64,000 nt of DNA from the NCBI GenBank assembly GCA_040285825.1, contig JAUPSS010000004.1:1-64000 (forward strand), read 5' to 3'. The DNA is from Eukaryota sp. TZLM1-RC (lineage: Eukaryota > Protista > Metamonada: BaSk clade). Position 1 is the stretch's first letter; each line of letters begins with the position of its first letter. A program made the position numbers and the translations under genes. Positions 6,976-61,492 of this stretch are shown piece after piece. The notes beneath the pieces were generated by a model. That model was given only the letters and a program-made list of their open reading frames with translations. It had not been told where the DNA came from and did no database searches.

Positions 6976-7851
6976 TTGCATATCGCTTATTCTGTATCTT
7001 GCTATAGCGTTAGTACTAACCTCTCTGAAGACTGTTTTCCTGTTCCTGCTGCTCGTGATCGTGCTCTTCTGATTCTGGGTAAAGATGACACTAATGAATA
7101 TTTTGCAAATGCTTTAAAACCAAAAACTCAATGGGCATTGTGTAATACTATTCATGTAGAATCTGTTTCCAAATTGAAGTCAACATTGTCACCAACTGAG
7201 CATAACTTTTTCAAGTACAACACATTGCCTTTTTCTGGTTCCTTTTTGACAGTTTGTCCTGCTAACACATTTTCTAGCTTCAACGATTCTGAATTCCGCT
7301 TTTTAAGTCATCTCCGGTTATTGAAACTTGTAGACTTGCCGATCTGCTCGAATTGTGGCTTTAAGAATATTGCTTCTGCCCATTCGATGAATTGCAATCG
7401 TACCTCCAAAGCCGTGATTGGAAGACACGATCGATGCAAAATGTTTTTGGCTAAATTGCTAGACATTCCAAATTCTGATATTGAAATTTCCTTACGTAGC
7501 GACTCAATTATTGGAAAAGCTGATTTTTTGCTAAGAAATCCAACAAGGTTTGTTGATGTGACTGTTATTGGGGGACATGGTCATGAACTCGACCTTGCTC
7601 TTCAAGCAGCTGTAGTGCGGAAGAAAACCAAATATGCCAGCCTTGTTAAAGATGGCATTGTTAAGGAAGTGTGTCCCATTGTATTTTCTATTTTGGGAGG
7701 GATTGAGAAGGCAACACTGAAAGAGCTGAAATCATGGAAGTTGAACTCATATGATATGAGCATTTTGTCCTGTATCATTGCCAAGGGTTCATATCGTTGT
7801 CACTTGGCATATGAGTCCTATAGTAGGAAAATGGTGCCTGTGCGGAATTAG
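6976..7851 (+). CDS. C-terminal fragment of retrotransposon ORF (CCHC zinc knuckle + restriction-like endonuclease); no true start codon
   Basis: CSNC..H..NC..RHD, KAD..FVDVTVIGG..KKTKY..PIVFS..GG motifs. The open frame begins exactly at the 5' junction. Confidence 0.88.
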   Translation: MHIAYSVSCYSVSTNLSEDCFPVPAARDRALLILGKDDTNEYFANALKPKTQWALCNTIHVESVSKLKSTLSPTEHNFFKYNTLPFSGSFLTVCPANTFSSFNDSEFRFLSHLRLLKLVDLPICSNCGFKNIASAHSMNCNRTSKAVIGRHDRCKMFLAKLLDIPNSDIEISLRSDSIIGKADFLLRNPTRFVDVTVIGGHGHELDLALQAAVVRKKTKYASLVKDGIVKEVCPIVFSILGGIEKATLKELKSWKLNSYDMSILSCIIAKGSYRCHLAYESYSRKMVPVRN

Positions 7852-7904
7852 GTTGTGTAGTTTTGATTTCTTAATTTTCTAGTTTTTCTATATTTCCAAA
7901 TAAA
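6976..7904 (+). mobile_element. Family A: 5'-truncated RLE non-LTR retrotransposon (CRE-like) in 28S, antisense to rRNA
   Basis: 14-bp TSD AACCTGTCTCACGA (6962-6975 / 7905-7918). Ends in AATAAA. Encodes the C-terminal CCHC knuckle and RLE domain. Confidence 0.93.
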
Positions 7905-7945
<41 letters not shown>

Positions 7946-8047
7946 TTAATGGGTGAACAATCCAACGCTTTGAGAATTCTGCTTCTCAATGATAGGAAGA
8001 GCCGACATCGAAGAATCAAAAAGCAACGTCGCTATGAACGCTTGGCT

Positions 8048-8090
<43 letters not shown>

Positions 8091-8449
8091 AGCTAAAAGT
8101 TTCTTATAGTTAAAGGATCGTTAGGCCACAATTTCTTGGTTTGTATTCATACTGAAAATCAAAATCAAGTGAGCTTTTACCCTTATGTTCTACATGAGAT
8201 TTCTGTTCTCATTGAGCTCACCTTAGGACACCTCCGTTATTATTTTGGAGATGTGCCGCCCCAGCCAAACTCCCCATCTGACAATGTCCTTAAATCCGAT
8301 CGTATCCGAAGACACTTAAATCTTGAAACAGGAAACCTGTTTCGGATTAATTAAGTTAGCAAACCAATGTCAAGAGTCAGGGTGTTTCATTGGCGTAGAT
8401 AAATCTACTCCCCTGTACGCTACACCTCCTGAATCGGTTCACAATATCA

Positions 8450-8487
<38 letters not shown>

Positions 8488-8493
8488 GAATTA

Positions 8494-8529
<36 letters not shown>

Positions 8530-8551
8530 GGTAGGTAGGGACAGTGGGAAC

Positions 8552-8584
<33 letters not shown>

Positions 8585-8585
8585 G

Positions 8586-8630
<45 letters not shown>

Positions 8631-9540
8631 TGTTTACCCGTGCTTGATTGAATCTCTTCACAATGACATTCAGAGCACTGAGCAGAAATCACTTTCTGTC
8701 AACACCGTTTCCGGCCATCAGAAAGCTTTGTTTCGATTAAACAGTCGGGTTCCCTTTGTCCGTTACAGTTCTAGGTTGACCTTTAATTGCATAAAAGTAA
8801 TCCCAATGGATCAACACCTCGCATCAACGCAATTGTTGCCAATCACATCAACGCTCAGTGCGTCACCACTAGGGCTCTTACACAAGGCCCCTAGAGCCAA
8901 TCCTTATCCCGAAGTTACGGATCTATTTTGCCGACTTCCCTTACCTACGTTCTTCTATAGACCAGAGGCTACACACCTTGGAGACCTGATGCGGTTATCG
9001 GTACGGACAACAATGAAGTGATTACTCCTCTAGATTTTCAAGGGCCGTTGAGAATACACCGGACATTACAAAAACGTAATGCTCTTCCTATCTTATATCC
9101 ACTTCTCCTGTTAAACAGATTCCATGGACAATAGACAGTTAATAAGAAAAGATAACTCTTCCCAGGATCCTCCCCGACATCTCTAGATTCGATTGTGTTA
9201 CCACGAACACCCACTGTTGGTGCAGGAATATTAACCTGCTTCCCTTTCGACAGGACGGAGCTATAAAAGCCCCCTCTCAAAGAGTTAACCTGTGCCTTAG
9301 GACCGACTAACCCATGGCAGAATACCTTTACCATGGAACCCTACTCCACTTCGGTCAACAAGATTCCAACTTGTTTATTTGCTACTACCACCAAGATCTG
9401 CACTAGAGGCTGCTCCAGTCCATTTCACAATGAACCTTCTACGCAACCCCCACGACGTTCTACACATTAACTCATAAAATGATTTAATGGACATGTATAG
9501 GTGGCACACTTTAGCGCAATCAATTTTCAGGGCTAGTTGA

Positions 9541-9574
<34 letters not shown>

Positions 9575-10416
9575 ATTCCGACTTCCATGGCCACCGTCCT
9601 GCTGTCAATATCAACCAACACCTTTTCTGGGGTCTAAATGAGTGCACACTTAGGCACCTTAACATGTCTTTTGGAGCATCCCACATCGCCAGTTCTGCTT
9701 ACCAAAAATGGCCCACTTAGAGCTATTATTCAATTGCAACGATCACTTAAGTATCATCACAAATCTTGCCCATTTAAAGTTTGAGAATAGGCTAAGGACA
9801 TTGCGTCCCTAGTACCTCCAATCATTAGCTTTACCGGACAAAACTAAAACAAGCTCCAGCTATCCTGGGGGAAACTTCGAACGTAACCAGCTACTAGCCG
9901 CTTCGATGAGTCTTTCGCCCCTATACCCAAATTTGACGAGTGATTTGCACGTCAACATCGCTACGGACTTCCACCAGAGTTTCCCCTGGCTTCATCCTAT
10001 TCAGGCATAGTTCAGCGGCTTTCGGGTCGTATCCATTCTGCTCATACTCAGATCCCTTTGCAAGGACTGGTTGAGGGTGCAGTTGTAACTTCCCCTCATA
10101 AAATTACTTTCATTTCGCCTTCAGGTTTTTACACCCTACGACTTGCAGAAGAGATACACTCCTTGGTCCGTGTTTCAAGACGGGACAATTGAACCTTTTA
10201 TGTTGGAGTCTCGGTAAAACCGTATTCCTGATTCTTAAAAAAGAACAATTTATGAGGCTATAACACTACAATAAACCGAAGTTCATTATAGCTACCTTCC
10301 CCACAATCACTCAATTTTCAAAATCACACCAACGCAAGACAGCCGAAGCTATCAATATCAAGTTCCAATCGCTTATCCTTTCAGTGATTTCAGGTACTTT
10401 TAACTCTCTCTTCAGA

Positions 10417-10447
<31 letters not shown>

Positions 10448-10954
10448 GAACTATCGGTCTCCTTTTATATTTAGCTTTATGGGAAACTTACCCCACATTT
10501 AACGCTGCATTCCCAAACAGCGCGACTCTCGGAAAATCAGTAGTGAATCAATTACTTCGATGTCATTTACAGGATTTTCACCTTCCATGATACCCTTTTC
10601 CAAAGGACTTATACATCGAGAACCGAATACTGGTTTCCATAGACAACAACTCTTCACAATCAATAGATCATAAAGATTCAGTCTTGAGCTTTTTCCTGTT
10701 CGCTCGCCGCTACTAAGGAAATCATAGTTATTTTCTTTTCCTCCCCTTATTGATATGCTTAAGTCCAGGGGGTGATCTTACTTGAAATCAGGTCGAAATG
10801 ATGTCTAAAAGACAATATATGAAAGAGATGAGTCGTCAATTAATGTAAAAGTTGCCTTCAACAATAAATGTTGACAAAAGTCAATCATATATTTGATTAT
10901 TTAAGAAAAGAAGTAACCTTCAATTCCAATTATCCGAAATGGAAAAATAAAAGA

Positions 10955-11116
10955 CGACGCTGATTCAAGTATAGTTCAATAAAGCCGAAGCTCTAAAGAA
11001 CTACCATTTGCGTTCAAAGTTTCGATGATTCACAGATTCTGCAATTCACATTACGTATCGCAATTCGCTGCGTTCTTCATCGATAAAGGAGCCGAGACAT
11101 CCATCACTGAAAGTTG
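10955..11116 (-). rRNA. 5.8S rRNA
   Basis: Reverse complement has ATCGATGAAGAACGCAGCGAA, GAATTGCAGAATCTGTGAATCATCGAA and TTTGAACGCAA. Ends are approximate. Confidence 0.95.
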
Positions 11117-11214
11117 GATGTTTCATAGAAACTATTAGTTTTTATAATAAAAAGGGTTGGTTCGGTATTAGGTTTCAGTTAAAGTGAAACTTGGCACGCC
11201 AAGCTCACAAACGA

Positions 11215-11354
11215 CAATGATCCATCCGCAGGTTCACCTACGGATACCTTGTTACGACTTCTCCTTCCTCTAGATGCAAAGATTCACTGAATTTTCCCAA
11301 CAAGTCTTGCTTTGCAGCTTAACCCATTGAGTCCAAACATTTCACCTCAACATC

Positions 11355-11400
<46 letters not shown>

Positions 11401-11793
11401 TTCAGCGCATGCTGATGACATGCACTTACAAGTTATTCCTCGTTCAAGACCCATAATTGCAAGGATCTATCCCAGTCAAGATAGGTATTCACAAGATTAC
11501 CCAAACCTTTCGGTTAAGGACAAACTCGTTGTACCTACCATTGTAGCGCGCGTGCGGCCCAGAACATCTAAGGGCATCACAGACCTGTTATTGCCTAAAC
11601 CTTCCTCTGTGTAAAACCACAGCAGTCTCGCTAAGAAGTTCAAACTATCCGAAAATAGAATAAAACTAGTTAGCAATTTAGATCTCGTTCGTTATCGGAA
11701 TTAACCAGACAAATCACTCCACCAACTAAGAACGGCCATGCGCCACTAACCGTAAGATCATGAAAGAGCTATCAATCTGTCAATCCTTATCAC
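11215..11793 (-). rRNA. 18S rRNA 3' fragment (downstream of the element D junction)
   Basis: GTAGGTGAACCTGCGGATGGATCATTG and GTACACACCGCCCGTC present. Breaks at CCTTATCAC (11793) relative to the intact copy at 18991-19010. Confidence 0.95.
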
Positions 11794-14700
11794 ATTAATT
11801 TATTTCACTACAAAAGTACAAAAGCTATGAGCTACAAAACTATAATTTATCTCTACTTACTACTTAGACGAAAAATGAGCAGTTATCAACATAAGGTGAA
11901 TGGACTATAAATGGCAATTTCTACCCTCAATCTTGCACCCCTGGTGGAGGCACAACCTGAGACAGGACGTCGACATTGTTTTCTGCCGATCCTTTGAAAT
12001 TGGAGAGTTTGCTAAGTTCAGAAAAATAACGTTTTTCCGCCCTTGCAGAACCTCTGATAATGGCCACCGATAATTTGGGAACAATATGAGATATCTCTAA
12101 AGTTCTCAGTCTATCGAGGTATTTCCCATGGATCCCACCAGAAACATAGGATATCAGGATCTCCATTAAATCCACTTCACCCTCTTCAATGAGTTTTTTA
12201 TGTTGAAACTTCTTACGCTTCACTGTCGATGCGACATGAGACGCAAGGGTTCCTTCACCACCACCAACGACTGTAAGGTCGTAGGCAGTTCTAGATGATT
12301 CATCAATTAAGTCAGGCCTACTGGCTTGAGACCATCTATTGAACTCACTCTTTGGCTCGATCCTAAATCCACTTGCCCTCCCAGTTATTTGTACAAGTGA
12401 ATCGTGGCGCGCTATTACTTCTCTAGAAGTTTTGCAATTGACAAAATGGCTAGCCGTTATGTCTTTCGCTCCACAGCTAGGGTAACCACACTTGGATCGA
12501 GGCTTGCTATGCATGAGTCTTCTTCTTACTCCGCTCATCATAGCATGATCGTCTAGTGTCAAATCTCTTTCAGTTGGAACAACTGTTAACCACCTGTGAC
12601 ACTCAGGCGTTAATTGCAGCTCAACCTCATGTCTGAGAGTTCTAGGTATCGCTGAAACATTGCTGGCTTTGCACTCTTCTGGAAAAAGAACCATTTCTGA
12701 AGACATTGCTGGCTTTTTGAAATAGTCCGTACATTCTTCGAAGAGTTGCTTCGCGAAATCTAAGTGGTAGAGACGTGTCTCTAGTTTTTGCATTCCTCTT
12801 AGATCAGCAATGCTAAGTTCTAGGAATGAACTCACATGTTTGGGGTCAACGAAACTACCTAACAAATAATCTAAACGAGATATTGTTGATTCTGTATACA
12901 GGTCCATAATTTTATTTTTATACCCCTATTTACCACAACAATACTACTTGCTAGACTACTTGCATTGGCAAGAACGCTAACCTTACTCCAATCGGTCATT
13001 CCGAGGCCGCCCCAGTTCATTGGCAAGGAGACCAACCCATCAAAGAGAACTTCCGTCTTGAACCAATTTCTTATGCAATTACAGACCAATTCATGAAACT
13101 TTTCCAAAAGTGAATTCGCCAGGTCAGGGGTCCAAGCGCGAGCAAGGAATCCTAGTTTGGGTTGAATACACATTCTTAAAAGTAACAAGCGATATTGCAA
13201 AGGAAGTATCTCTAAGCTTACTAGACTCTTTTCTAGCTCTTTGACTTTTAAGTCACTTTGTTTTTGGGGATAGGGAACCGATAGGACATCCTAAGACGTC
13301 AAAGGTTGGGTTGTTCGATAGTTGAACTATCTCGCATTTTTCGCGGTTGACTTTGCATCCAACAGGGGCACTTAGTTCCGAGAACAAGTCAAGGAACATA
13401 TTACATTGTTCTTCGCTAGTGCAGAGAACTGCAATATCATCCAGATAACCTAGAGACACGGCATCTGGGAATTCAGAACCCATTTTGGACATGATATCAT
13501 CTATGCCTACGGCAAAGAGATACGGACCTAGTGGGTCTCCCTGTTTCACACCACACGTTGATTCAATGCTTCCTTCCGAATGGAAAAGCTTAGAGCTTCT
13601 TCCGTAAATTCTTAGGAACGAAGGTACCATTTCTGGTGCTAAGTTCTTCAAATTTTTCAGAATTTCACATCGATGAATACTATTGAAAGCATTCGCTATA
13701 TCAATTTTCAACAAATGAGAAAATCGATCTGTGGTGGTAGATTGTCTTACAGAATGAATAATGGCTTCAGCTCCACAAGGGATCTTAACACCAAATTGTC
13801 CATTCATCGCCAATCTTTCCGGGTCAACCTTACGGAGTATAGCCTTGGCGTATATCCGGTAGAACAGTTCTCCGACGGCAATTGGTCTTACACTATGACC
13901 GTCGTTTTTGGGGATGGGTACTAGACGAGAATTTAAAAGGACTTCAACAAGAACCTCTTGACTTTCGTCTTGAGGACCATTATGAAGCACCTTCGAGATA
14001 TACCAAAGCATATCATCGAAGTAGGCTCCCGAAGGAACCAACTTCTTCGTCCACATTGTGGGACCACCGGAAGAAGAAGTGCACATTGTTCTAAGAACGC
14101 CGGTTACATCTTCAATAGATAAATCGATCTTAGGCGAACCTGGATCGATATCAGCAACTTCTCCAGATGGATGCAATTTTTGAAGTTGCGCGGTGATCTG
14201 CTCTTTGGTTAATTGAAATGGCGTAACATCGCGTTCGAGTAAAGCCATCGCCTTACTACATGAACCATCTCTAACCAACTCCATCGCCCTCCTTGACTGC
14301 TCTTTCGCGATTCCCTCTTCAGTTCTATTTTTTCTTTTAAGATTATCAGGCCTTAAAAGATTAACCACCTCGTTGCATGTTATTTCGTCCTGATTATTAC
14401 GATTGATAAGATCAATAAGACGATTAAGCTGGGTGAAACAATTTCCCTTTCTACCATATAGAAAAACATAAGGGGAAATCAATAAATACATCCATTTTTG
14501 AGTCATCGTGGCATCACTATTAGCAATGCTTCCAATAACTCCTCTCCAAGTACCCTTGGACCGAAGTCTAGCGTACCTGGTGGATGCAATTTCATGGTAG
14601 AGTACTCTAAACAATTCCGCACTAAGTACAGGCAGTTCTTTGTACTCTAGACCAGCTTCAGGCATGCATACCTTCTTATGATTTGTTAGCCCAGTCGAAG

Positions 14701-17339
14701 TGAAAACACCTCTACAGGAAGGGCACACACCGTATCCCTTTGCTGCTAACTCATCATCCGTGACCCCCGGATGAAACCTCGCCAAATGCTCTAAGAGCTT
14801 ATTGTTATTAGGAAAAGTCCAGTCACAACTGGTAACTGGACAAACTTTTTTAACTTTTCCCTTACAATACTTTTTATGGATGTTAATTGATTTGGGTTGA
14901 TCTTTCACCACTGTTCTGCATTTACCGCAGCGGTGGAATCCATTCGCTTTATATTGAGAATCAGGGATGTCCCCGTGCTCTACACTCAGGTGATTGTGTA
15001 GGCTTTTAATTGTATTGAATGTGAACTCACATTCTTCGACGAAACACGTGGTCAGCTTAATAGTTCCTTGTGATCGTCTTCCTATTGGTTTCTCTAGGCT
15101 TGGACTTGGAGAGTGATCTCTAGTTTCGGCCGCCAATAGGTCCCTGATATCTCGCGGGGGTCTTGAGGGGTTAGAACTGGTTTGACTGGTTTGTTTTTCT
15201 TTGCCTGGAAAGACAAACTTTAAACCTTCTTTTAATTTTGATTGTGGTTGTTGAGTGCAATCCTCGACACTCATTGCTCTAATTGGAACATATGTAAAAT
15301 TAGGTGACTTATCACCTACAATGCTGTTTTTTGCAAAACGCAGAGCCATTTTCATTCGTTCCTTTGTTAATTTATTCGCAGCACTGGAGACACCTTTTAC
15401 TTTCTCCAATGTTAATACATAGGGTAACCCTTCCCTTTTAGAGCATATTTTATTAATAACAGGTCTTAGCTGTGTTACATTCACTGTTGACCTACCCATA
15501 ATTCTCTCGAAGGCCCAGTCGCAATCGGTGATAATCACTGCAGATTGCATATCCCGAGGACGTACCTCAGGTTTTTCAATTAGGAGCATTGCTGCCAGCA
15601 AAGCATGGCTTTCTGCACCTAGACCGGTTGTAACGCCTTCACAAGGTCCGTAGTAATCTAAATAATGGTCCCCGTTATAATACATAACGATTCCCATTCC
15701 CGTCCTTGTATTTGACTTGGGTATGCTTCTAAATGCACCACTTGCGTAGATCATTAGAGCATTTTGAGGATTGGGGATTCTATGTTTAGGCCCTGTACTC
15801 TCCGAATCCTTAAAAGAGACAGTGCCACTGTGTGCTGGTTTTAAACCTGATTTTAGGTGTTTCTTTGCTGTTGATACACCTCGCTGATGAGTGTTTCTTG
15901 CTGTTGATACAGCTAGCTGGTGGGTGTTTTTTGCTGTTGATACACCTAACTTAGGTGTTTTACTCGTTGATGTGACACCTTGTCTAGGTTTTCCCGCTGT
16001 TGAATGTCTTTTTGACCTTTTCTTAATGCAATCAATTTCAATGTGAGAGCCAGAGTTTAAATTTTCGTTACCAATAAAGGTAGGCTTGTGCCCCTCCCTA
16101 TCCTCCGAAGAGGAATCGGGAGAGCGAGAACGTAAACTGCTAGAAGGACCTGACATATCATGAATTTTTTGAAAGAAGAAAAAGAAAAATATATTTATAA
16201 CCACTCGGTATTCAGTGATTGTTGTATTTTTTTTTGTTTGTATTTATTTCTCACCTAAGGTTAGTTTTTTTTTGTTCGGTCCCCTTCCCAATTAGCTTAC
16301 GAAGGTTTCCTCATGAGAAGTCGACAGTGTCATACTCATAATACCTGCTCTAAGTAAAACACTGTTGATCCTAGTTTGCCTTATATGAATATAAGTCATT
16401 CTTGAATCACTTACCCTCCTCGAAGACTAAATAAAGGAATTCTTTGTCCCAGGAAAATTTTCAAAGAAAAAACCCCCAACAATGGAATCCATTGATGAGG
16501 GTTGTGACAAATCTAATGTTGAAAAATGTTTGTTAAGTCCTATGTCCCAAATGCTACACGGGAATACCCTACGCCCACTAATAGTATATGAACCCCCTCC
16601 GACAAGGTAATATACTAAAGTGTTGAAATGGAATAGGTAAACAAGACTATGTCTGAACACCGAATTTGTAAATCTTCCCCGGAAACGGAGGGGTTCAACA
16701 GTCCGAAGACCATCAAACTCCGGTTGGAATCTACGCCGACTTAGTTCGAACAATGTCTTAGTTTAAGTGTTGACCTTCAAGTCATCTAAACATCCTGAAA
16801 CAAATTAATGTAACAGAGATTAAGCGAAAGGACAAGGCAAGAACTTCAAAAGCTCTCGATATCTGCTCAGTTTCAACTGAGCTTCGTCAACTACTGTATA
16901 TCATAGGATGCCACCTAAGATTATTAAAATCCACTCGCTATGTGTTAGGTCTTCGCGAGCTTAACTGAAACAAATTTCATATAAGAATTTTTACAAATTC
17001 CTCTTGGGATTCTGAGTAGTTGTTCTAAAGAACAACTACAGTTCACGACGGTCTTAATTAATTATAACTACTGTTGCTCAAAAGAACAACCAACCACCAA
17101 GCCTAATGGTTTTCGTGTTTGTTAGTCAGACACTCCGAAGAGCACCAAACTAACGGTTTCACTGAATGTTTCTCCAAGGAGCAACAAACTTTCAAGAATT
17201 CCCTTTTGGGGGTGTCAAACTGCCGTTCAAAAGAGCAGCAGTCTAACTCTTGGACCAATTATCCTTATACCTGACATTTTAAAGATACACCCGATTGCTC
17301 GGTTACTCTTGCTCAGGCATAAACGGATACCAAGCAATA
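11794..17339 (-). mobile_element. Family D: near full-length (5.5 kb) CRE-like RLE non-LTR retrotransposon, same sense as rRNA; 3' end in 18S, 5' end in 28S
   Basis: Non-rDNA sequence bounded by sharp rDNA junctions. ~1.2-kb 5' leader, ~4.2-kb ORF, 133-bp 3' UTR ending AATAAATTAAT. Confidence 0.93.
11927..16156 (-). CDS. Retrotransposon polyprotein (~1400 aa): RNase H-like domain, 4 zinc fingers, reverse transcriptase, CCHC, RLE; split by two frameshifts (~13250, ~12900)
   Basis: Joins track ORFs 13253-16204, 12871-13200 and 11927-12907. CRE-type RT motifs LVPIPK..VRPIAVGE, QFGV..G.E, DIANAFNS, GVKQGDPLGP, YLDD, LGCPIG, GGLG. RLE motifs C..C..H..C..RHD, EP..RPD..YDLTVVGG..K. ATG at 16156 is the likely start. 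Confidence 0.9.
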
Positions 17340-18001
17340 CCTACGACTTGCAGAAGAGATACACTCCTTGGTCCGTGTTTCAAGACGGGACAATTGAACC
17401 TTTTATGTTGGAGTCTCGGTAAAACCGTATTCCTGATTCTTAAAAAAGAACAATTTATGAGGCTATAACACTACAATAAACCGAAGTTCATTATAGCTAC
17501 CTTCCCCACAATCACTCAATTTTCAAAATCACACCAACGCAAGACAGCCGAAGCTATCAATATCAAGTTCCAATCGCTTATCCTTTCAGTGATTTCAGGT
17601 ACTTTTAACTCTCTCTTCAGAGTTCTTTTCACCATTCCCTCACGGTACTTGTGAACTATCGGTCTCCTTTTATATTTAGCTTTATGGGAAACTTACCCCA
17701 CATTTAACGCTGCATTCCCAAACAGCGCGACTCTCGGAAAATCAGTAGTGAATCAATTACTTCGATGTCATTTACAGGATTTTCACCTTCCATGATACCC
17801 TTTTCCAAAGGACTTATACATCGAGAACCGAATACTGGTTTCCATAGACAACAACTCTTCACAATCAATAGATCATAAAGATTCAGTCTTGAGCTTTTTC
17901 CTGTTCGCTCGCCGCTACTAAGGAAATCATAGTTATTTTTCTTTTCCTCCCCTTATTGATATGCTTAAGTCCAGGGGTGATCTTACTTGAAATCAGGTCG
18001 A
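17340..18001 (-). rRNA. 28S rRNA 5' fragment (~660 nt), truncated at the 5' junction of element D
   Basis: Matches 10135-10796. Confidence 0.95.
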
Positions 18002-18160
18002 AATGATGTCTAAAAAGACAATATATGAAAGAGATGAGTCGTCAATTAATGTAAAAGTTGCCTTCAACAATAAATGTTGACAAAAGTCAATCATATATTT
18101 GATTATTTAAGAAAAGAAGTAACCTTCAATTCCAATTATCCGAAATGGAAAAATAAAAGA

Positions 18161-18322
18161 CGACGCTGATTCAAGTATAGTTCAATAAAGCCGAAGCTCT
18201 AAAGAACTACCATTTGCGTTCAAAGTTTCGATGATTCACAGATTCTGCAATTCACATTACGTATCGCAATTCGCTGCGTTCTTCATCGATAAAGGAGCCG
18301 AGACATCCATCACTGAAAGTTG
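18161..18322 (-). rRNA. 5.8S rRNA (second copy)
   Basis: Same sequence as 10955-11116. Confidence 0.95.
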
Positions 18323-18420
18323 GATGTTTCATAGAAACTATTAGTTTTTATAATAAAAAGGGTTGGTTCGGTATTAGGTTTCAGTTAAAGTGAAACTTGG
18401 CACGCCAAGCTCACAAACGA

Positions 18421-18560
18421 CAATGATCCATCCGCAGGTTCACCTACGGATACCTTGTTACGACTTCTCCTTCCTCTAGATGCAAAGATTCACTGAATTT
18501 TCCCAACAAGTCTTGCTTTGCAGCTTAACCCATTGAGTCCAAACATTTCACCTCAACATC

Positions 18561-18606
<46 letters not shown>

Positions 18607-19055
18607 TTCAGCGCATGCTGATGACATGCACTTACAAGTTATTCCTCGTTCAAGACCCATAATTGCAAGGATCTATCCCAGTCAAGATAGGTATTCACAA
18701 GATTACCCAAACCTTTCGGTTAAGGACAAACTCGTTGTACCTACCATTGTAGCGCGCGTGCGGCCCAGAACATCTAAGGGCATCACAGACCTGTTATTGC
18801 CTAAACCTTCCTCTGTGTAAAACCACAGCAGTCTCGCTAAGAAGTTCAAACTATCCGAAAATAGAATAAAACTAGTTAGCAATTTAGATCTCGTTCGTTA
18901 TCGGAATTAACCAGACAAATCACTCCACCAACTAAGAACGGCCATGCGCCACTAACCGTAAGATCATGAAAGAGCTATCAATCTGTCAATCCTTATCACG
19001 TCTGGACCTGGTAAGTTTCTCCGTGTTGAGTCAGATTAAGCCGCAGGCTCCACAA

Positions 19056-19114
<59 letters not shown>

Positions 19115-20202
19115 TTACCCAAGAACTTATGGTTTCCCATAAGGTGCTAATAGGGTCGTATTTAACGCCTACTAATCCCTAGTCGGCATAGTTTATGGTT
19201 GAGACTACGACGGTGTCTAATCGTCTTCGATCCCCCAACTTTCGACCTTGATTAATGAGAACATCTTTGGCAAATGCTTTCGCAGTAGTTAGTCATCCGG
19301 CAATCCAAGAATTTCACCTCTGACACCGGAGTACTAATGCCCCCAACTGTCCCTTTTAATCATTACTCTAGTTCTCAAAACCAATAAAACAGAACCAAAG
19401 TCCTATTCTATTATTCCATGCTAAGTTATTCAATTGCATAAAGCCTGCTTTGAACACTCTAATTTTTTCAAAGTAAACGGTCTGAATTCAATAGCCACCG
19501 CCGAAGCAAATGACTAGTGTCCTCAGACAGAAAAAACTGTTTACCAACAGGAAAACCTGAAGATACGCAAATTCTGAGATTCAACTACGGACGATTTAAA
19601 CGCAGCAATTTTAAGATACACTACTAGAGCTGGAATTACCGCGGCTGCTGGCAGCAGACTTGCCCTCTAGTAGCTCCTCGTTAAAGGTTTTAAGTTGTAC
19701 TCATTCCAATTACGAACTCAAAAGAGCCCAGTATTGTTATTTTTTGTCACTACCTCCTCGTAATGAGATTGGGTAATTTTCGCGCCTGCTGCCTTCCTTG
19801 GATGTGGTAGCCATTTCTCAGGCTCCCTCTCCGGAATCAAACCCTAATTCCCCGTTACCCGTCATCACCATCGTAAGCCACTACCTTACGATTTAGTTGA
19901 TAGGGCAGTGATTTAAATGATATGTCGCCGTCCGAAGACATGCGATCAGCATAGTTATTATGATTCACCAAAGACCTGTTGCCAGGATTGGTTTTGTATC
20001 TAATAAATGCATACTTCAAAAGAAGTATTTGCTGCATGTATTAGCTCTAGAATTACAACGGTTATCCAAGTAGTAAGTACTATCAAATAAATTATCACTG
20101 ATTTAATGAGCCATTCGCTGTTTCGGAGAAAACTCCTGAAATAGACATGCATGGCTTAATCTTTGAGACAAGCATATGCCTACTGGCAGGATCAACCAGG
20201 TA
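18421..20202 (-). rRNA. 18S (SSU) rRNA, complete
   Basis: 5' TACCTGGTTGATCCTGCCAGTAG, TGCCAGCAGCCGCGGTAA, AAACTTAAAGGAATTGACGG, 3' GGATCATTG; ~1.78 kb. Confidence 0.98.
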
Positions 20203-20877
20203 TCAACAATAAAACATTCCGATTAAAAAACCAGAAAATTTCATAACTGTTACCTTTTGTAAAATCAATCAAAAAATGATTGTAACAATGTTGATCATTT
20301 GTGCTTTCCATAAAGATCCATTACATCCTGATAAATGTAATCAAATCTTATTGATGTGTCAATTTAAATATTCAATCAAAAATGATTTCCATAAAATTCG
20401 ACACGTGTAGTAAAATTTAATGTTTCCATTAAGGCTTACATACAACACCAAAATTTTGTTCAACATGAACAATTGAGCTGTTTTCACATTTTCATAAATT
20501 ATTTAAAAACAATCAATTGAAAATGATCAAATAGCAAGTACTTTCCGAAATGGGATAAAAAAATGAAAATTTCTTTCATTTCCTGACCCCCATTTCACGT
20601 TTCGCCATTTTTTGTGGTCTGATCTCATTTGGATGATTTTGAATCAATTTGTATAAAACAAAGAACCTTTTTGTAAAATCCACAATTTTAGACCATAATG
20701 GTCATCACTGTAAAACAACACCAGCAAATGCTATAACTAGAAATCTGTGATTCGTGTTTATACAAAAAACAGGACAACAGAACCAAAATCTATTGGATAA
20801 TGGGTTGGTAAAATTCCAATGTCAAAATTGGAAAACCTGAAGTTTGAAACCAGACCCAAAATCTGATCTTCCAACCT
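20203..20877 (-). promoter_or_regulatory. 5'-ETS / presumptive Pol I promoter region
   Basis: AT-rich region directly upstream of 18S. The block TGGGTTGGTAAAATTCCAATGTCAAAATTGGAAAA.CTGAAGTTTGAAAC (20801-20850) is repeated in the 1.15-kb IGS units. Start site not identifiable. Confidence 0.5.
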
Positions 20878-28532: not shown

Positions 28533-29210
28533 ACAGTAGACAGTCAATCTTCTTGTTTTTTGAAAGTCTTGCCTATTTCTCAAAATTTCACGTTCTCAGA
28601 TGATTGCTTTAAATACCTAATAAATCTGAGATTGCTTCAAGGAGAACAATTTGTGATATGTCCTTTGTGTGGTTATGGAGACCTAGGCTTAGATCACTCT
28701 TTTCAATGTAGAAAAGTCTCGAGAATGGTTACACAAAGACATAACGAAGTAAATAATTTTATTAACGAATTAAATAATTTTGAATCTGAAAAGGAATTTA
28801 AATTTGGTTTAAATAAGCAGTTACGTATTGATGGCTTTCAAACGTCAACCAAAATTGCTTTTGATGTTACCATAGTTGGAGGTTATGGTAATAATTGGAG
28901 TGATGCTTTTTCGAAAGCTTATTCTGATAAAATTGCAAAGTATTCAATTTTAAAAGAATTAAATTTAATTAACCAAATTGTTCCTCTCGTTTTTAGTGTT
29001 CATGGGGGTTTTTACACTAAAACAAAAGTACTGTTTGACCAATTTGGATGGAATGAGGTAGCAAATGAAATTAGTTGTATCATTTTGAAGAATAGCTTTA
29101 AATGCCACAGTGCATTTAATTATATACTTCAAAAGAAAAGAGAAGATCGTCAATGTTGGTAGGTAGTTGTTTTTTAGTATTCAAGTAGTTTCTTCTTAAT
29201 TTTCAATAAA
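28533..29210 (+). mobile_element. Family B 5'-truncated RLE retrotransposon (678 bp)
   Basis: 12-bp TSD AGTAAATCGTAT (28521-28532 / 29211-29222), AATAAA end, CPLC..H..C..RH..FDVTIVGG..K..KY. Confidence 0.93.
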
Positions 29211-41870: not shown

Positions 41871-42411
41871 TTTATTGAAAATTAAGAAGAAACTACTTGA
41901 ACACTAAAAAAAATTACCTACCAACATTGACGATCTTCTCTTTTCTTTTGAAGAATATAATTAAAAGCACTGGACATTTAAAGCTATTCTTCAAAATGAT
42001 ACAACTAATTTCATCTGCTACCTCATTCCATCCAAATTGGACAAACAGTATTTTTGTTTTAGTGTAAAAACCCCCATGAACACTAAAACCAGAGGAACAA
42101 TTTGGTGAATTAAATTTAATTCTTTTAAAATTGAATATTTTGCAAGTTTATCAGAATAAGCTTTCGAAAAAGCATCACTCCAATTATTACCATAACCTCC
42201 CAAAATCAAAAGCAATTTTAGTTGACGTTTGAAAGCCATCAACACGTAACTGCTTATTTAAACCGAATTTAAATTCCTTTTCAGATTCAAAATTATTTAA
42301 TTCGTTAATAAAATTATTTACTTCGTCATGTCTTTGTGTAACCATTCTTGAGACTTTTCTACAATGAAACGAGTGATCTAAGCCAAGGTCTCCATAACCA
42401 CACAAAGGAAT
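41871..42411 (-). mobile_element. Family B copy (~550-bp class, frameshifted)
   Basis: TSD ATACGATTTACT 41859-41870 / 42412-42423. Confidence 0.92.
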
Positions 42412-45855: not shown

Positions 45856-46405
45856 TTTATTGAAAATTAAGAAGAAACTACTTGAACACTAAAAAAACTA
45901 CCTACCAACATTGACGATCTTCTCTTTTCTTTTGAAGAATATAATTAAAAGCACTGTGACATTTAAAGCTATTCTTCAAAATGAAACAACTAATTTCATC
46001 TGCTACCTCATTCCATCCAAATTGGTCAAACAGTATTTTTGTTTTAGTGTAAAAACCCCCATGAACACTAAAAACGAGTAGAACAATTTGGTTAATTAAA
46101 TTTAAATCTTTTAAAATTGAATATTTTGCAATTTTATCAGAATAAGCTTTCGAAAAAGCATCACTCCAATTATTACCATAACCTCCAACTATGGTAACAT
46201 CAAAAGCAATTTTAGTTGACGTTTGAAAGCCATCAACACGTAACTGCTTATTTAAACCGAATTTAAATTCCTTTTCAGATTCAAAATTATTTAATTCGTT
46301 AATAAAATTATTTACTTCGTCATGTCTTTGTGTAACCATTCTTGAGACTTTTCTACATTGAAAAGAGTGGTCTAAGCCAAGGTCTCCATGACCACACAAA
46401 GGAAT
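45856..46405 (-). mobile_element. Family B copy (550 bp)
   Basis: TSD 45844-45855 / 46406-46417; open frame 45902-46426. Confidence 0.92.
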
Positions 46406-51050: not shown

Positions 51051-52113
51051 TTTATTGAAAATTAAAAAAAACTACTTGAACACTAAAAAAAATTACCTAC
51101 CAACATTGACGATCTTCTCTTTTCTTTTGAAGAATATAATTAAAAGCACTGTGACATTTAAAGCTATTCTTCAAAATGATACAACTAATTTCATCTGCTA
51201 CCTCATTCCATCCAAATTGGACAAACAGTATTTTTGTTTTAGTGTAAAAACCCTCATGAACACTAAAAACGAGAGGAACAATTTGGTGAATTAAATTTAA
51301 TTCTTTTAAAATTGAATATTTTGCAATTTTATCAGAATAAGCTTTCGAAAAAGCATCACTCCAATTATTACCATAACCTCCAACTATGGTAAAATCAAAA
51401 GCAATTTTAGTTGACGTTTGAAAGCCATCAACACGTAACTGCCTATTTAAACCAAATTTAAATTCCTTTTCAGATTCAAAATTATTTAATTCGTTAATAA
51501 AATTATTTACTTCGTCATGTCTTTGTGTAACCATTCTTGAGACTTTTCTACATTGAAACAAGTGATCTAAGCCTAGGTCTCCATGACCACACAAAGGACA
51601 TATCACAAATTGTTCTCCTTGAAGCAATCTCAGATTTATTAGGTATTTAAAGCAATCATCTGAGAACGTGAAATTTTGAGAAATAGGCAAAACTTTCAAA
51701 CAACAAGATGATTGAGTGCCACAATTTGAAATAAATTGTAGTCGTTCACATTCTGATAGTTTTTCTTTCAAACGACTCAATTTTTCCTTATAAAATAAAT
51801 GAGTGATTTGACGTTGGCAAATTTTAATTCGTTTGTCCCAGATTGAGTCAAAACCAGCAAAAGAAGGTGATAAAGCTGATAGTAAAACCCTATACTGATC
51901 ACTTGGAATTAAATTTGTTAAATCAAGATCACGTACAGCCAAGTATACAGAAACTGAATAGCAAATATGTGCAACTTGGCCCAGATGGAGAAACCCTAAT
52001 CCACCCAAAGAATGAGGCAAATAAATTAAATCTAAATTATTTGATTCTTCCAATCCTATTAAGTTGAAATAAGCAACAAATTCTGAAACCCAAAGATGAA
52101 AACCCATTCTGGT
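51051..52113 (-). mobile_element. Family B longest copy (1063 bp)
   Basis: TSD 51039-51050 / 52114-52125. Uninterrupted frame from LP...GGLG (post-RT) through CCHC and RLE. Confidence 0.93.
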
Positions 52114-55100
52114 ATACGATTTACTGAGGCTCATATAAAGTTCCTAGTTTCGTATATTGACCAATGGTTGTTTATTACAATCATTGGTCAAATCTTTAAA
52201 GTCCATTTTGGGACAATTAATATAACAATTGTGGTGTTAAAGTCCGTGCTATGGTCATTTGATTAGTCATTGGCATGATTGGTTGAATGGTCATTGGTAT
52301 GATTAGATGAGTTGCATGTAGTCTTTATGTACTAGATGTGATCAACTTGTGATCAAACTTTGTGTGAAATTGTGTGTGAGTAATGTTGGCTATGTGTTAC
52401 TTGGTCAATACATACTCATGATTGCTTTTTCAATTGATTTTGTATATATTTGAATTAATTGAGTTTATTAATTTTTAAATATTAAATTGTAAAAAAAGTA
52501 AAAAATCAAAAAGTATACAATTGAATGTTGTAAACTAAAAGAACTATTGCTGTAAGTGTAAGAGTATCGTTTTTGATACGATTTACTGGGGCTCATATGA
52601 AGTTCCTAGTTTCGTTTATTGACCAATGGTTGTTTAATAACAATCATTGGTCAAATCTTTAAAGTCCATTTTGGGACAATTAATATAACAATTGTGGTGT
52701 TAAAGTCCGTGCTATGGTCATTTGAGTAGTCATTGGTATGATTAGTTCAATGGTCATTGGTATGATTGGGTGAGTTGCATGTAGTCTTTATGTACTAGAT
52801 GTGATCAACTTGTGATCAAATTTTGTGTGAAATTGTGTGTGAATAATGTTGGCTATGTGTTACTTGATCAGTACAAACTCATGATTACATTTTCAATTGA
52901 TTTTGTATATATTTGAATTAATTGAGTTTATTAATTTTTAAACAATAAATTGTAAAAATAGTAAAAAATCAAAAAGTATACAATTGAATGTTGTAAACTA
53001 ATAAAACCATTGCTGTAAGTGTAAGAGTATCGTTTTTGATACGGTTTACTGAGGCTCATATGAAGTTCCTAGTTTCGTTTATTGACCAATGGGTTGTTTA
53101 TTACAATCATTTATCAAATGTTTAAAGTCCATTTTGGGACAATTAAATATAACAATTGTGGTGTTAAAGACCGTGCTATGGTCATTTGAGTAGTCATTGG
53201 TATGATTAGTTCAATGGTCATTGGTATGATTAGATGAGTTGCATGTAGTCTTTATGTACTAGATGTGATCAACTTGTGATCAAACTTTGTGTGAAATTGT
53301 GTGTGAGTAATGTTGGCTATGTGTTACTTGGTCAATACATACTCATGATTGCTTTTTCAATTGATTTTGTATATATTTGAATTAATTGAGTTTATTAATT
53401 TTTAAATATTAAATTGTAAAAAAAGTAAAAAATCAAAAAGTATACAATTGAATGTTGTAAACTAATAAAACAATTGCTGTAAGTGTAAGAGTATCGTTTT
53501 TGATACGATTTACTGGGGCTCATATGAAGTTCCTAGTTTCGTTTATTGACCAATGGTAGTTTAATAACAATCATTGGTCAAATCTTTAAAGTCCATTTTG
53601 GGACACTTATTATAACAATTGTGGTGTTAAAGTCCGTGCTATGGTCATTTGAGTAGTCATTGGTATGATTAGTTCAATGGTCATTGGTATGATTGGGTGA
53701 GTTGCATGTAGTCTTTATGTACTAGATGTGATCAACTTGTGATCAAATTTTGTGTGAAATTGTGTGTGAATAATGTTGGCTATGTGTTACTTGATCAGTA
53801 CAAACTCATGATTACATTTTCAATTGATTTTGTATAAATTTGAATTAATTGAGTTTATTAATTTTTAAACAATAAATTGTAAAAATAGTAAAAAATCAAA
53901 AAGTATACAATTGAATGTTGTAAACTAATAAAACCATTGCTGTAAGTGTAAGAGTATCGTTTTTGATACGGTTTACTGAGGCTCATATGAAATTCCTAGT
54001 TTCGTATATTGACCAATGGTTGTTAATAACAATCATTGGTCAAATCTTTAAAGTCCATTTTGGGACACTTATTATAACAATTGTGGTGTTAAAGACCGTG
54101 CTATGGTCATTTGAGTAGTCATTGGTATGATTAGTTCAATGGTCATTGGTATGATTAGATGAGTTGCATGTAGTCTTTATGTACTAGATGTGATCAACTT
54201 GTGATCAAACTTTGTGTGAAATTGTGTGTGAGTAATGTTGGCTATGTGTTACTTGGTCAATACATACTCATGATTGCTTTTTCAATTGATTTTGTATATA
54301 TTTGAATTAATTGAGTTTATTAATTTTTAAATATTAAATTGTAAAAAGTAAAAAATCAAAAAGTATACAATTGAATGTTGTAAACTAATAAAACAATTGC
54401 TGTAAGTGTAAGAGTATCGTTTTTGATACGATTTACTGGGGCTCATATGAAGTTCCTAGTTTCGTATATTGACCAATGGTTGTTTATTACAATCATTGGT
54501 CAAATCTTTAAAGTCCATTTTGGGACAATTAATATAACAATTGTGGTGTTAAAGTCCGTGCTATGGTCATTTGAGTAGTCATTGGTATGATTGGTTGAAT
54601 GGTCATTGGTGTGATTAGATGAGTTGCATGTAGTCTTTATGTACTAGATGTGATCAACTTGTGATCAAACTTTGTGTGAAATTGTGTGTGAGTAATGTTG
54701 GCTATGTGTTACTTGATCAGTACAAACTCGTGATTACATTTTCAATTGATTTTGTATATATTTGAATTAATTGAGTTATTAATTTTTAAACATTAAATTG
54801 TAAAAATAGTAAAAAATCAAAAAGTATACAATTGAATGTTGCAAACTAATATAACCATTGCTGTAAGTGTAAGAGTATCGTTTTTGATACGATTTACTGA
54901 GGCTCATATGAAGTTCCTAGTTTCGTATATTGACCAATGGTTGTTTATTACAATCATTGGTCAAATCTTTAAAGTCCATTTTGGGACAATTAATATAACA
55001 ATTGTGGTGTTAAAGTCCGTGCTATGGTCATTTGAGTAGTCATTGGTTTGATTGGTTGAATGGTCATTGGTATGATTAGATGAGTTGCATGTAGTCTTTA

Positions 55101-58100: not shown

Positions 58101-60625
58101 AGTGTAAGAGTATCGTTTTTGATACGGTTTACTGAGGCTCATATGAAGTTCCTAGTTTCGTATATTGACCAATGGTTGTTTAATAACAATCATTGGTCAA
58201 ATCTTTAAAGTCCATTTTGGGACACTTATTATAACAATTGTGGTGTTAAAGTCCGTGCTATGGTCATTTGAGTAGTCATTGGTATGATTAGTTCAATGGT
58301 CATTGGTATGATTAGATGAGTTGCATGTAGTCTTTATGTACTAGATGTGATCAACTTGTGATCAAACTTTGTGTGAAATTGTGTGTGAGTAATGTTGGCT
58401 ATGTGTTACTTGGTCAATACATACTCATGATTGCTTTTTCAATTGATTTTGTATATATTTGAATTAATTGAGTTTATTAATTTTTAAATATTAAATTGTA
58501 AAAAAAGTAAAAAATCAAAAAGTATACAATTGAATGTTGTAAACTAATAGAACTATTGCTGTAAGTGTAAGAGTATCGTTTTTGATACGGTTTACTGAGG
58601 CTCATATGAAGTTCCTAGTTTCGTATATTGACCAATGGTTGTTATAACAATCATTGGTCAAATCTTTAAAGTCCATTTTGGGACACTTATTATAACAATT
58701 GTGGTGTTAAAGTCCGTGCTATGGTCATTTGAGTAGTCATTGGTATGATTAGTTCAATGGTCATTGGTATGATTAGATGAGTTGCATGTAGTCTTTATGT
58801 ACTAGATGTGATCAACTTGTGATCAAACTTTGTGTGAAATTGTGTGTGAGTAATGTTGGCTATGTGTTACTTGGTCAATACATACTCATGATTGCTTTCA
58901 ATTGATTTTGTATATATTTGAATTAATTGAGTTTATTAATTTTTAAATATTAAATTGTAAAAAAGTAAAAATCAAAAGTATACAATTGAATGTTGTAAAC
59001 TAATAGAACTATTGCTGTAAGTGTAAGAGTATCGTTTTTGATACGATTTACTGGGGCTCATATGAAGTTCCTAGTTTCGTTTATTGACCAATGGTTGTTT
59101 AATAACAATCATTGGTCAAATCTTTAAAGTCCATTTTGGGACAATTAATATAACAATTGTGGTGTTAAAGTGACGTGCTATGGTCATTTGAGTAGTCATT
59201 GGTATGATTAGTTCAATGGTCATTTGTATGATTGGGTGAGTTGCATGTAGTCTTTATGTACTAGATGTGATCAACTTGTGATCAAATTTTGTGTGAAATT
59301 GTGTGTGAGTAATGTTGGCTATGTGTTACTTGGTCAATACATACTCATGATTGCATTTTCAATTGATTTTGTATATATTTGAATTAATTGAGTTTATTAA
59401 TTTTTAAATATTAAATTGTAAAAAAAGTAAAAAATCAAAAAGTATACAATTGAATGTTGTAAACTAATAAAACTATTGCTGTCAGTGTAAGAGTATCGTT
59501 TTTGATACGATTTACTGGGGCTCATATGAAGTTCCTAGTTTCGTTTATTGACCAATGGTTGTTTATTACAATCATTGGTCAAATCTTTAAAGTCCATTTT
59601 GGGACAATTATTATAACAATTGTGGTGTTAAAGTCCGTGCTATGATCATTTGAGTAGTCATTGGTATGATTAGTTCAATGGTCATTGGTATGATTAGATG
59701 AGTTGCATGTAGTCTTTATGTACTAGATGTGATCAACTTGTGATCAAACTTTGTGTGAAATTGTGTGTGAGTAATGTTGGCTATGTGTTACTTGGTCAAT
59801 ACATACTCATGATTGCTTTTTCAATTGATTTTGTATATATTTGAATTAATTGAGTTTATTAATTTTTAAATATTAAATTGTAAAAAAAGTAAAAAATCAA
59901 AAAGTATACAATTGAATGTTGTAAACTAATAGAACTATTGCTGTAAGTGTAAGAGTATCGTTTTTGATACGATTTACTGGGGCTCATATGAAGTTCCTAG
60001 TTTCGTTTATTGACCAATGGTTGTTTAATAACAATCATTGGTCAAATCTTTAAAGTCCATTTTGGGACAATTAATATAACAATTGTGGTGTTAAAGTGAC
60101 GTGCTATGGTCATTTGAGTAGTCATTGGTATGATTAGTTCAATGGTCATTTGTATGATTGGGTGAGTTGCATGTAGTCTTTATGTACTAGATGTGATCAA
60201 CTTGTGATCAAATTTTGTGTGAAATTGTGTGTGAGTAATGTTGGCTATGTGTTACTTGGTCAATACATACTCATGATTGCATTTTCAATTGATTTTGTAT
60301 ATATTTGAATTAATTGAGTTTATTAATTTTTAAATATTAAATTGTAAAAAAAGTAAAAAATCAAAAAGTATACAATTGAATGTTGTAAACTAATAAAACT
60401 ATTGCTGTCAGTGTAAGAGTATCGTTTTTGATACGATTTACTGGGGCTCATATGAAGTTCCTAGTTTCGTTTATTGACCAATGGTTGTTTATTACAATCA
60501 TTGGTCAAATCTTTAAAGTCCATTTTGGGACAATTATTATAACAATTGTGGTGTTAAAGTCCGTGCTATGATCATTTGAGTAGTCATTGGTATGATTGGT
60601 TGAATGGTCATTGGTAAGATTAGGT

Positions 60626-61492
60626 CTTTATTGAATTTCTAAAAGAAAAAGAACGGAAAAACTATAAAAGTAAATAAAAAAAACATAAACTACCAAAACC
60701 TACGAGCTTCATGAATTCTTTGAAGAATAGAATTAAATGCTTGATTACATCTAAAACTATTTTTCTGAATTATACAACTAATTTCACTGCAAAGCTCAAT
60801 CCAACCAAAACGTTTAAATGTTTCTTTTTGTTTCTTTAGTTTTCTTGTACCAATCCCCATGGACATTAAAAACTAAAGGAACAATTTCTGAAATTAAATT
60901 GTATTCTTTTAGAATACTGTATTTCCTTATTTTAGTAGCAAATGCTTGAGAGTAAGCATCTTGCCATTTATTTCCAAAACCACCAACTATTGTAATATCA
61001 AACGCAATTTTGGTTTTGGGATCAAATAAATCTAAATAAAATTTTTTTAAACCAATTTCAAATTCCTTTTCCTTTTCATATTTGGAGATATTTAATAAAT
61101 AATCTCTAACTTCATCATGTCTGTTTTTAATGCATCGTGAAACACCTTTACATTGAAAACTATGGTCTAAACCGAGATTTGTGTAACCACATCTGGGACA
61201 CTGATGATAAAAATTATTAAAAATTAATCGAAGATTCAGAAAATAAGACATGAATTCATCAGAAAAAGTGAAATTTGCATTAAAAGGTAATGCATTCAAA
61301 AAACTACCTGAAAGTTCAGAACAATTAGCTTCTAATTGTAATTTTTCCATATCAGACATTGTTTTTTGAAGAGAATTCATTTCATTTTTATAAAATTCCT
61401 TTGTTAATTTTGATTGAGAAATTATTATGTCTTTATCCCAAATAGACTCATATCCTACAAATTGTGGATTTAAAGTAGAATAGATGATTATA
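60626..61492 (-). mobile_element. Family C 5'-truncated RLE retrotransposon (867 bp) at a second site in the repeat
   Basis: 13-bp TSD GGTAAGATTAGGT (60613-60625 / 61493-61505), AATAAAG end, CPRC..H..C..RHD..FDITIVGG; protein paralogous to family B. Confidence 0.9.

Follow-up and report, generated by a model that had tools for sequence, protein, structure and literature searches.

A probable Skoliomonas-specific lineage of restriction-like-endonuclease retrotransposons at several exact sites of the ribosomal DNA

What kind of mobile element can occupy several different points of one ribosomal RNA gene unit, and do so in both orientations? This question is raised by a 64,000-nucleotide (nt) stretch of DNA (the window; contig JAUPSS010000004.1, positions 1 to 64,000) from the genome of Skoliomonas litria TZLM1-RC (Eukaryota sp. 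TZLM1-RC), a free-living metamonad. A sequence-only reading had described four related retrotransposon families in it, denoted A to D, each inserted at its own place in ribosomal DNA (rDNA). We find that the window is very probably a defective, rearranged rDNA stretch of S. litria, colonised by one Skoliomonas-specific lineage of retrotransposons that lack long terminal repeats (non-LTR) and are of the restriction-like endonuclease (RLE) type, the R2 group. The analysis supports a radiation that is real, wider than first described, and marked by genuine target switching. All four families lie where they had been placed, but "four" was an undercount, with at least three further lineages and at least two further sites now added. 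This is a known kind of element and a new protist case.

All rRNA genes in the window lie on the minus strand according to Rfam, and families A, B and C are therefore antisense to rRNA and D sense, as had been read from the letters. Family A interrupts the 28S gene and is bounded by a target-site duplication (TSD):

6976..7904, plus strand: family A, 5'-truncated, 291 aa of CCHC plus RLE, antisense to 28S, 3' end ...CCAAATAAA
6962..6975 (left) and 7905-7918 (right): TSD of A, the 14-mer AACCTGTCTCACGA, 28S nt 2878-2891 in the own numbering of this gene

From the 23S structure we take this sequence to be helix 93 at the peptidyl-transferase centre. The 14-bp duplication claimed earlier is borne out by both flanking 14-mers, and the 28S copies at loci L009 and L011 hold AACCTGTCTCACGA only once and therefore represent the empty site. 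The same helix-93 site is filled, again antisense, by P0271 in TZLM3-RCL (TSD AACCTGTCTCAC) and by P0276 in GEM-RC1. Both proteins share about 35% identity with A and group with it in the RLE tree described below. The GEM-RC1 element is nearly full length and carries zinc fingers, reverse transcriptase (RT), CCHC and RLE, with no RNase H. Site specificity is thus strong for A and its kin, which are found at the same nucleotide in three species.

Family B is present in ten copies with perfect AGTAAATCGTAT 12-mers on both sides and the 3' end ...TTTTCAATAAA, in agreement with the 28S 3'-end motif and 12-bp TSD first reported for it. The copies fall into three classes of 5' truncation, of about 678 bp (n=2), about 550 bp (n=6) and 1063 bp (n=1), the tenth copy being clipped by the window end:

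28533..29210, plus strand: B truncation class 1, 216-aa open reading frame (ORF), 12-bp TSD; second copy at 29685-30362
41871..42411, minus strand: B truncation class 2, about 550 bp, one of six
43802-44374, 44825-45391, 45844-46417, 61776-62349 and 62800-63372: the other TSD-bounded intervals of class 2
51051..52113, minus strand: B truncation class 3 and the longest of all, with a 345-aa ORF that spans RT thumb, linker, CCHC and RLE, 12-bp TSD
about 63886: tenth copy of B, clipped by the window end
6578..6589: empty B target AGTAAATCGTAT of the 28S gene proper, 28-39 nt before its 3' end

The last ~75 nt of 28S are copied into every spacer subrepeat, as can be seen from the repeat alignment, which reaches 6624 while the gene stops at 6550. 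Every subrepeat therefore carries a B target, and the window holds 65 exact copies of AGTAAATCGTAT. Many B copies share a truncation point and recur with a period of ~1020 bp, and copies beyond the independent events were probably amplified along with the array. At least three independent events at one nucleotide nevertheless make site specificity strong for B.

The B ORFs of all three truncation classes (positions 28512-29162, 51097-52134 and 61834-62358, plus copies) are in frame with an ATG of the flanking 28S-like motif, and their products of 216, 174 and 345 aa all start with a flank-encoded MSLSKSY. These fusions could be a coincidence or could be expressed RLE-only proteins. If the latter, the truncated B copies might be domesticated endonuclease genes, not dead stubs, a reading for which the shared start and the intact RLE catalytic residues can be cited. 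We consider it highly improbable: three in-frame fusions would arise by chance about 1 time in 27 (about 1 in 9 given the first), and several B copies carry frameshifts or deletions. Truncated copies such as these, in A, B and C alike, are dead and of the kind that incomplete reverse transcription commonly leaves behind.

Family C lies in the spacer and has its closest relative at another site, in the 28S gene:

60626..61492, minus strand: family C, 5'-truncated and frameshifted near its 3' end, in a spacer subrepeat
61493-61505 and 60613-60625: 13-bp TSD of C, ACCTAATCTTACC
9896..9907: empty 28S-900 site AGCCGCTTCGAT, 28S nt 889-900, used elsewhere by F, C2, P0122 and P0123

The 13-bp TSD that had been stated for C is borne out by ACCTAATCTTACC on both sides. 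A second copy, at L003, has the same truncation point and flanks and is therefore a duplicate of one event. The nearest relative of C, denoted C2 (about 80% DNA identity), is inserted antisense at 28S nt 889-900 in L004, where it is stacked with a further element, F (P0121). Both are antisense and both end in ...ATAAA|AGCCGCTT. In TZLM3-RCL, P0122 (12-bp TSD AGCCGCTTCGAT) and P0123 occupy the identical 28S nt 889-900 site. With four elements in two species, the 28S-900 group shows strong site specificity. The duplications of these two sister groups, AGTAAATCGTAT for B and AGCCGCTTCGAT for 28S-900, share an initial AG and a TCG..AT near the end, with 5 of 12 positions identical in register. To judge from these letters, the likeness may reflect a recognition sequence inherited from a shared ancestor.

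Family D is the near-complete one of the four, and its 18S location and sense orientation had been correctly recognised:

11795..17339, minus strand: family D, near full length, sense; ~1.18-kb 5' untranslated region, ORF from 16158 to 11930
11223..11794, minus strand: 3' part of 18S from nt ~1204, the 3' flank of D
17340..17978, minus strand: 28S nt 1-639 of the upstream rDNA unit, the 5' flank of D
18421..20202, minus strand: complete 18S of the upstream unit (Rfam), with the empty D site at 18999/19000

The D ORF encodes, in this order, an RNase H-like domain, alternating C2H2/CCHC fingers, an RT (PF00078/RVT_1, 1.6e-24 in Pfam), CCHC and RLE. Its frame is broken by two homopolymer indels (at 13265 and 12925-12926, +1 and +2 relative to the intact copy), and an intact copy of 1408 aa, P0299, with RVT_1 present and 99.65% identity, is found on another contig (L011). 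The 3' end ...AAATAAATTAA joins 18S after nt ~1203, and this junction is the same in the window and in L011. The 5' ends differ: the window copy has its full 5' leader against 28S, and the L011 copy starts 644 nt further in, against gypsy sequence. D has no TSD, since on its 5' side it abuts the 28S of the upstream unit at nt 639. The flanks are most simply explained as adjacent tandem units lacking 28S nt 640 to 18S nt 1203, a large deletion at the 5' junction. A "1.66-kb duplication restoring 18S" (10135-11793 and 17340-18999, 99.8% identical) was considered and not adopted, as adjacent units with a deletion give the same layout. An Rfam scan of the D 5' leader gave chance-level matches only and no ribozyme like that of hepatitis delta virus, although a divergent one may have escaped the scan.

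A second sense element, E (P0126), is intact at 1155 aa and carries RNase H (PF00075, 67 bits), RT (RVT_1) and RLE. It has the same 28S junction, ACCCT|ACTGAA, at its two loci (L001 and L011) and, like D, is found without the expected upstream 28S. The window holds its empty site:

6950..6951: empty E site ACCCT|ACTGAA, 710 nt downstream of the R2-equivalent site 8603/8604 and 11-12 nt from the A TSD

The RNase H-like domain of D (15305-15814, minus strand) is degenerate, with its first catalytic Asp replaced, and is 26% identical to the RNase H of E (P0126 residues 75-209). Upstream of the RT, E thus has an RNase H, D a degenerate one, and the nearly full-length A-like element none. Searching with the whole E protein retrieved only E itself and no relative with the same N-terminus.

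All informative junctions lie in 18S, 28S or rDNA spacer. One could still argue that the elements have no true specificity, that they inserted loosely and persisted in silent rDNA or spacer, and that the junction repeats come from unequal crossing-over. The many array-amplified B copies with a shared truncation point and ~1020-bp period, the duplicate origin of the second C copy, and the related fragments found beyond rDNA and nested in each other would all fit such an account. It is very unlikely, however, because three B truncation classes end at an identical nucleotide, the helix-93 and 28S-900 sites are used at the same nucleotide across species by proteins that are 30-35% identical, F and C2 are stacked at one site, and orientation is constant inside each clade. 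Exact junctions show each family at its own rDNA site, and sister lineages sit at different exact sites; target switching is therefore indicated, as the sequence-only reading had proposed.

Are these families indeed one lineage? The C-terminal domains of A to D are homologous, with pairwise tblastn E-values of 1e-12 to 1e-73; identities are 23-31% among A, B and D, and B and C share 50-57%. The invariant positions of the alignment are C, C, H, C, RH, D, D and K. The C-terminal signature first proposed, CxxC through a terminal GG, is thus real in substance, except that C ends in GD and not GG. Its D-x-T-x-x-GG part recurs in 9 of the 12 domains from Skoliomonas; of 98 external homologues, none has it. 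A profile of 29 domains matches the CCHC plus RLE region of R2 proteins in PDB (9nl3, 1.4e-13; R2Tg, 9dou, 1.8e-13; R2Bm, 8gh6, 9e-11), with CxxC, H, C, RH, PD, DVTV and K..KY all aligned. With the D C-terminal ORF alone, the PDB matches were spurious ones to pentatricopeptide repeats; the domain profile was needed to reach R2. The best PDB matches of the D RT are also R2 proteins, at 49 bits, with environmental homologues at 154 bits. Since the profile matches the R2 endonuclease and the RT has R2 proteins as its best, if distant, PDB matches, the elements are RLE-type non-LTR retrotransposons, and comparison of the domains supports reading A to D as related members of that type.

Pfam detected the RT domain PF00078 in D, P0299, P0126 and P0276, no APE domain, no match for the A, B and C ORFs, and no model fitting the C-terminal domain. 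It had been claimed that D alone shows an RT; this stands in so far as PF00078 is found in D and not in the A, B or C ORFs, but the longest B product (345 aa) reaches into the RT thumb.

With HMMER, a profile of the A to D domains was compared with 1.84 billion cluster representatives. On re-scoring, 15 sequences, whether proteins or ORFs of the window, reached at least 121 bits, all of them from TZLM1-RC, TZLM3-RCL and GEM-RC1, and the next match scored 70 bits. The RT and RLE searches otherwise returned almost only metagenome proteins; cluster look-ups named Skoliomonas only, and the ESM Atlas gave generic RT clusters. In an RLE-domain tree of 110 rows, all 12 Skoliomonas rows form one clade, with a Shimodaira-Hasegawa-like approximate likelihood ratio test (SH-aLRT) value of 93. 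A, B, C and kin make up a subclade of it (SH-aLRT 96), below which D, E and P0135 branch. In the RT trees, D, E and the A-like elements of two other species form one clade, with support of 98 (95 rows) and of 99 by ultrafast bootstrap and 97 by SH-aLRT (50 rows). The monophyly of A to D suggested from the letters is thus recovered in the RLE tree, and that of D, E and the A-like elements in the RT trees; together these support the Skoliomonas elements as probably a single clade relative to the nearest database homologues. The tree also tracks orientation and architecture: the A/B/C group is antisense and without RNase H, and in D and E insertion is sense and an RNase H, degenerate in D, lies at the N-terminus.

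Several points weigh against this picture. Monophyly is relative to the nearest database homologues, which served as outgroups, and the Skoliomonas sequences have long branches and skewed composition, for which they were flagged in the trees. The spacer site of C represents one insertion event, and its closest relative sits at a different site; C may have landed off target or have switched very recently. Downstream of D, the rDNA of the two loci is 99.65% identical, and by that likeness both may derive from a single insertion. Fragments akin to these elements are also found beyond rDNA, some of them nested (L002, L008, L010 and L012); these are D-, A- or E-like, without usable 3' junctions or rDNA flanks. 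The evidence for a target preference shared among copies is uneven: it is strong for A, through its kin in three species, and for B, is moderate for D with two loci that may not be independent, is equally drawn from two loci for E, and is weak for C.

One of these fragments has an unusual structure of its own. At positions 6628-9435 of L002 (on the window contig, 73-88 kb), outside rDNA and among gypsy fragments, an element combines an N-terminus like that of E (82% identity) with an RT like that of D (77-90%) and lacks its 3' end. The two levels of likeness suggest recombination between families.

Where does the lineage belong among known RLE elements? Five RLE clades have been listed, CRE, R2, R4, NeSL and HERO, besides Dualen, and an RNase H upstream of the RT is described as unique to the oomycete Utopia elements (PMC4640811). 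TSDs are made by all known CRE and R4 elements, and NeSL and most R2 elements make deletions (PMC3636483). The elements were called CRE-like in the sequence-only reading, and they could be an offshoot of the CRE clade (CRE1/2, SLACS, CZAR, MoTeR, Cnl1) that moved into rDNA. A TSD at every complete insertion here would agree with that, as would the order zinc fingers-RT-CCHC-RLE and the spacing of the restriction-enzyme-like (REL) signature, which fit the published SLACS/CRE pattern, and the distance of the D RT from R2 (49 bits, against 154 for environmental homologues). Against it, the REL signature is found throughout the RLE clades, an RNase H precedes the RT in D and E, and the targets are in rDNA and not in spliced-leader genes or telomeres. 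We regard a CRE origin as unlikely.

The lineage could instead belong to another named RLE group (NeSL/Utopia, to which the RNase H points, the Giardia elements GilM, GilT and Genie, or R4/HERO), as a new subfamily rather than an independent lineage. The position of the RNase H is that of oomycete Utopia, the NeSL-related R5/LIN elements also target 28S, and Skoliomonas is a metamonad related to Giardia, sister to Fornicata. Yet no oomycete or Giardia protein appears among the 120 best RT matches or the named top RLE matches, the full-length search with E retrieved no relative with its N-terminus, and TSDs are made here where NeSL elements make deletions. The antisense group is without RNase H, so that the domain may be a local acquisition. 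On balance this placement appears possible, though on the doubtful side.

We tentatively propose, at somewhat less than even probability, that the Skoliomonas elements are a separate, undescribed RLE clade, whose endonuclease would have been re-targeted at least six times within one rDNA unit and one of whose subclades would insert antisense and be transcribed independently of RNA polymerase I (Pol I), with matched protein-target pairs across three species.

The insertions bear the marks of retrotransposition: TSDs of 12-14 bp, variable 5' truncation, short A-rich ...ATAAA 3' ends, intact catalytic motifs, and full-length intact ORFs for D and E. We suggest that each element encodes one protein, in which zinc fingers at the N-terminus are followed by an RT, a CCHC knuckle and a restriction-like endonuclease of the PD-(D/E)xK kind. 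By analogy with R2, the RLE, aided by the zinc fingers, would nick the target sequence-specifically and target-primed reverse transcription would follow; a second nick 12-14 bp away would give the TSD, and frequent 5' truncation leaves RLE-only stubs of the kind seen in A, B and C. The lineage has probably split into an antisense group without RNase H, comprising A and its kin at helix 93, F, C2, P0122 and P0123 at 28S nt 889-900, B, and C, and a sense group with RNase H or an RNase H-like domain, comprising D, which sits in 18S, and E, which sits in 28S at a point 710 nt past the R2 site.

The two groups would also differ in how they are transcribed. The sense elements could be co-transcribed with the pre-rRNA. 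The antisense elements are barred from Pol I read-through and therefore require antisense transcription or a promoter of their own, the latter being presumably what they use. Antisense insertion without Pol I read-through is the most unusual feature of the lineage, and in non-exhaustive literature searches we found no report of antisense-inserting rDNA specialists.

How intact is the rDNA in which these elements reside? The remaining rDNA features of the window are as follows:

6550..10795, minus strand: 28S of the downstream rDNA unit, complete but split by element A (Rfam LSU_rRNA_eukarya, 2897 bits, model 1-3401)
10955-11115, minus strand: 5.8S (Rfam)
11223-11841, minus strand: 3' part of 18S, extent of the Rfam match
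17373-17978, minus strand: 5' piece of 28S, extent of the Rfam match
18161-18321, minus strand: second 5.8S (Rfam)
1..6624: spacer array with subrepeats of about 458-460 bp; more at 26987-32308 and, inverted, at 40483-60625

Both rDNA units are non-intact, and neither is functional. The right-hand array at 40483-60625 is inverted relative to the array at 1-6624 downstream of 28S, and between the arrays lie single-copy-like genes, including an EPL1-like ORF (38822-40123) and a SWIM/MULE-like ORF (36862-37791), with a few host or transposon genes at 33-40 kb. Given the inverted array and the intervening genes, the locus departs from a plain tandem arrangement of rDNA units. Directly upstream of 18S lies a Ty3/gypsy retrotransposon (20700-26990) with a 765-aa pol ORF at 21084-23381, in a region where units of about 1.15 kb are repeated across 23735-26984. 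Gypsy pieces of similar kind flank D- and E-type elements in L002, L011 and L012.

To our knowledge, published rDNA specialists are almost all from animals. No non-LTR specialist from a protist is among those listed in a 2024 review on transposable elements of the rDNA (PMC10946416). Our literature searches found no paper describing the Skoliomonas elements, and in the Skoliomonas genome paper the words "retrotransposon", "rDNA" and "transposable" are all absent. Of the earlier proposal of an independent, probably undescribed rDNA lineage, what stands is a single clade against database homologues for which no describing paper was found.

R2 and other site-specific RLE retrotransposons serve as the model for target-primed reverse transcription, and they are in development for safe-harbour gene insertion. 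The Skoliomonas elements form a compact protist set of related proteins, 25-57% identical, at no fewer than six exactly defined rDNA sequences, with two sites shared between species and with both orientations represented, and so provide a ready comparison for finding which parts of the protein read the target. They also raise the question of how an rDNA element lives without co-transcription by Pol I. If they prove to be a separate clade, they would constitute a natural series of re-aimed R2-like integrases.

Among known systems, the CRE clade (CRE1/2, SLACS, CZAR, MoTeR, Cnl1 and FoTeR) resembles the Skoliomonas elements in being of RLE type, in occurring in protists and fungi, in making TSDs and in its compatible REL spacing. 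It differs in its targets, which are spliced-leader genes or telomeres where those of Skoliomonas are in rDNA, and we know of no RNase H reported in it. The oomycete Utopia elements of the NeSL clade are likewise RLE elements with an RNase H upstream of the RT and a multicopy RNA-gene target. That target is, however, the U2 small nuclear RNA genes, and in Skoliomonas the antisense group is without RNase H and D has lost the first catalytic Asp. R4 of nematodes and R5/LIN of planarians, which we liken here by description and not by reference sequences, are RLE elements at 28S sites other than that of R2, and R4 makes TSDs; they are animal lineages and use other sites. A parallel in organisation is also seen with R2, R8 (in 18S) and R9 (in 28S) of animals, in which, as in the elements described here, one ORF encodes N-terminal zinc fingers, RT and, at the C-terminus, CCHC plus RLE, and integration into rRNA genes is site-specific. 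In Skoliomonas, unlike R2, the R2-equivalent site 8603/8604 is uninterrupted, Pfam detects no Myb domain, half of the lineage is antisense, and an RNase H or RNase H-like domain is found at the N-terminus of D and E. The number of targets also sets the two apart, with at least six sites in Skoliomonas against the two target changes, R8 and R9, reported for the whole R2 superclade (PMC5035012).

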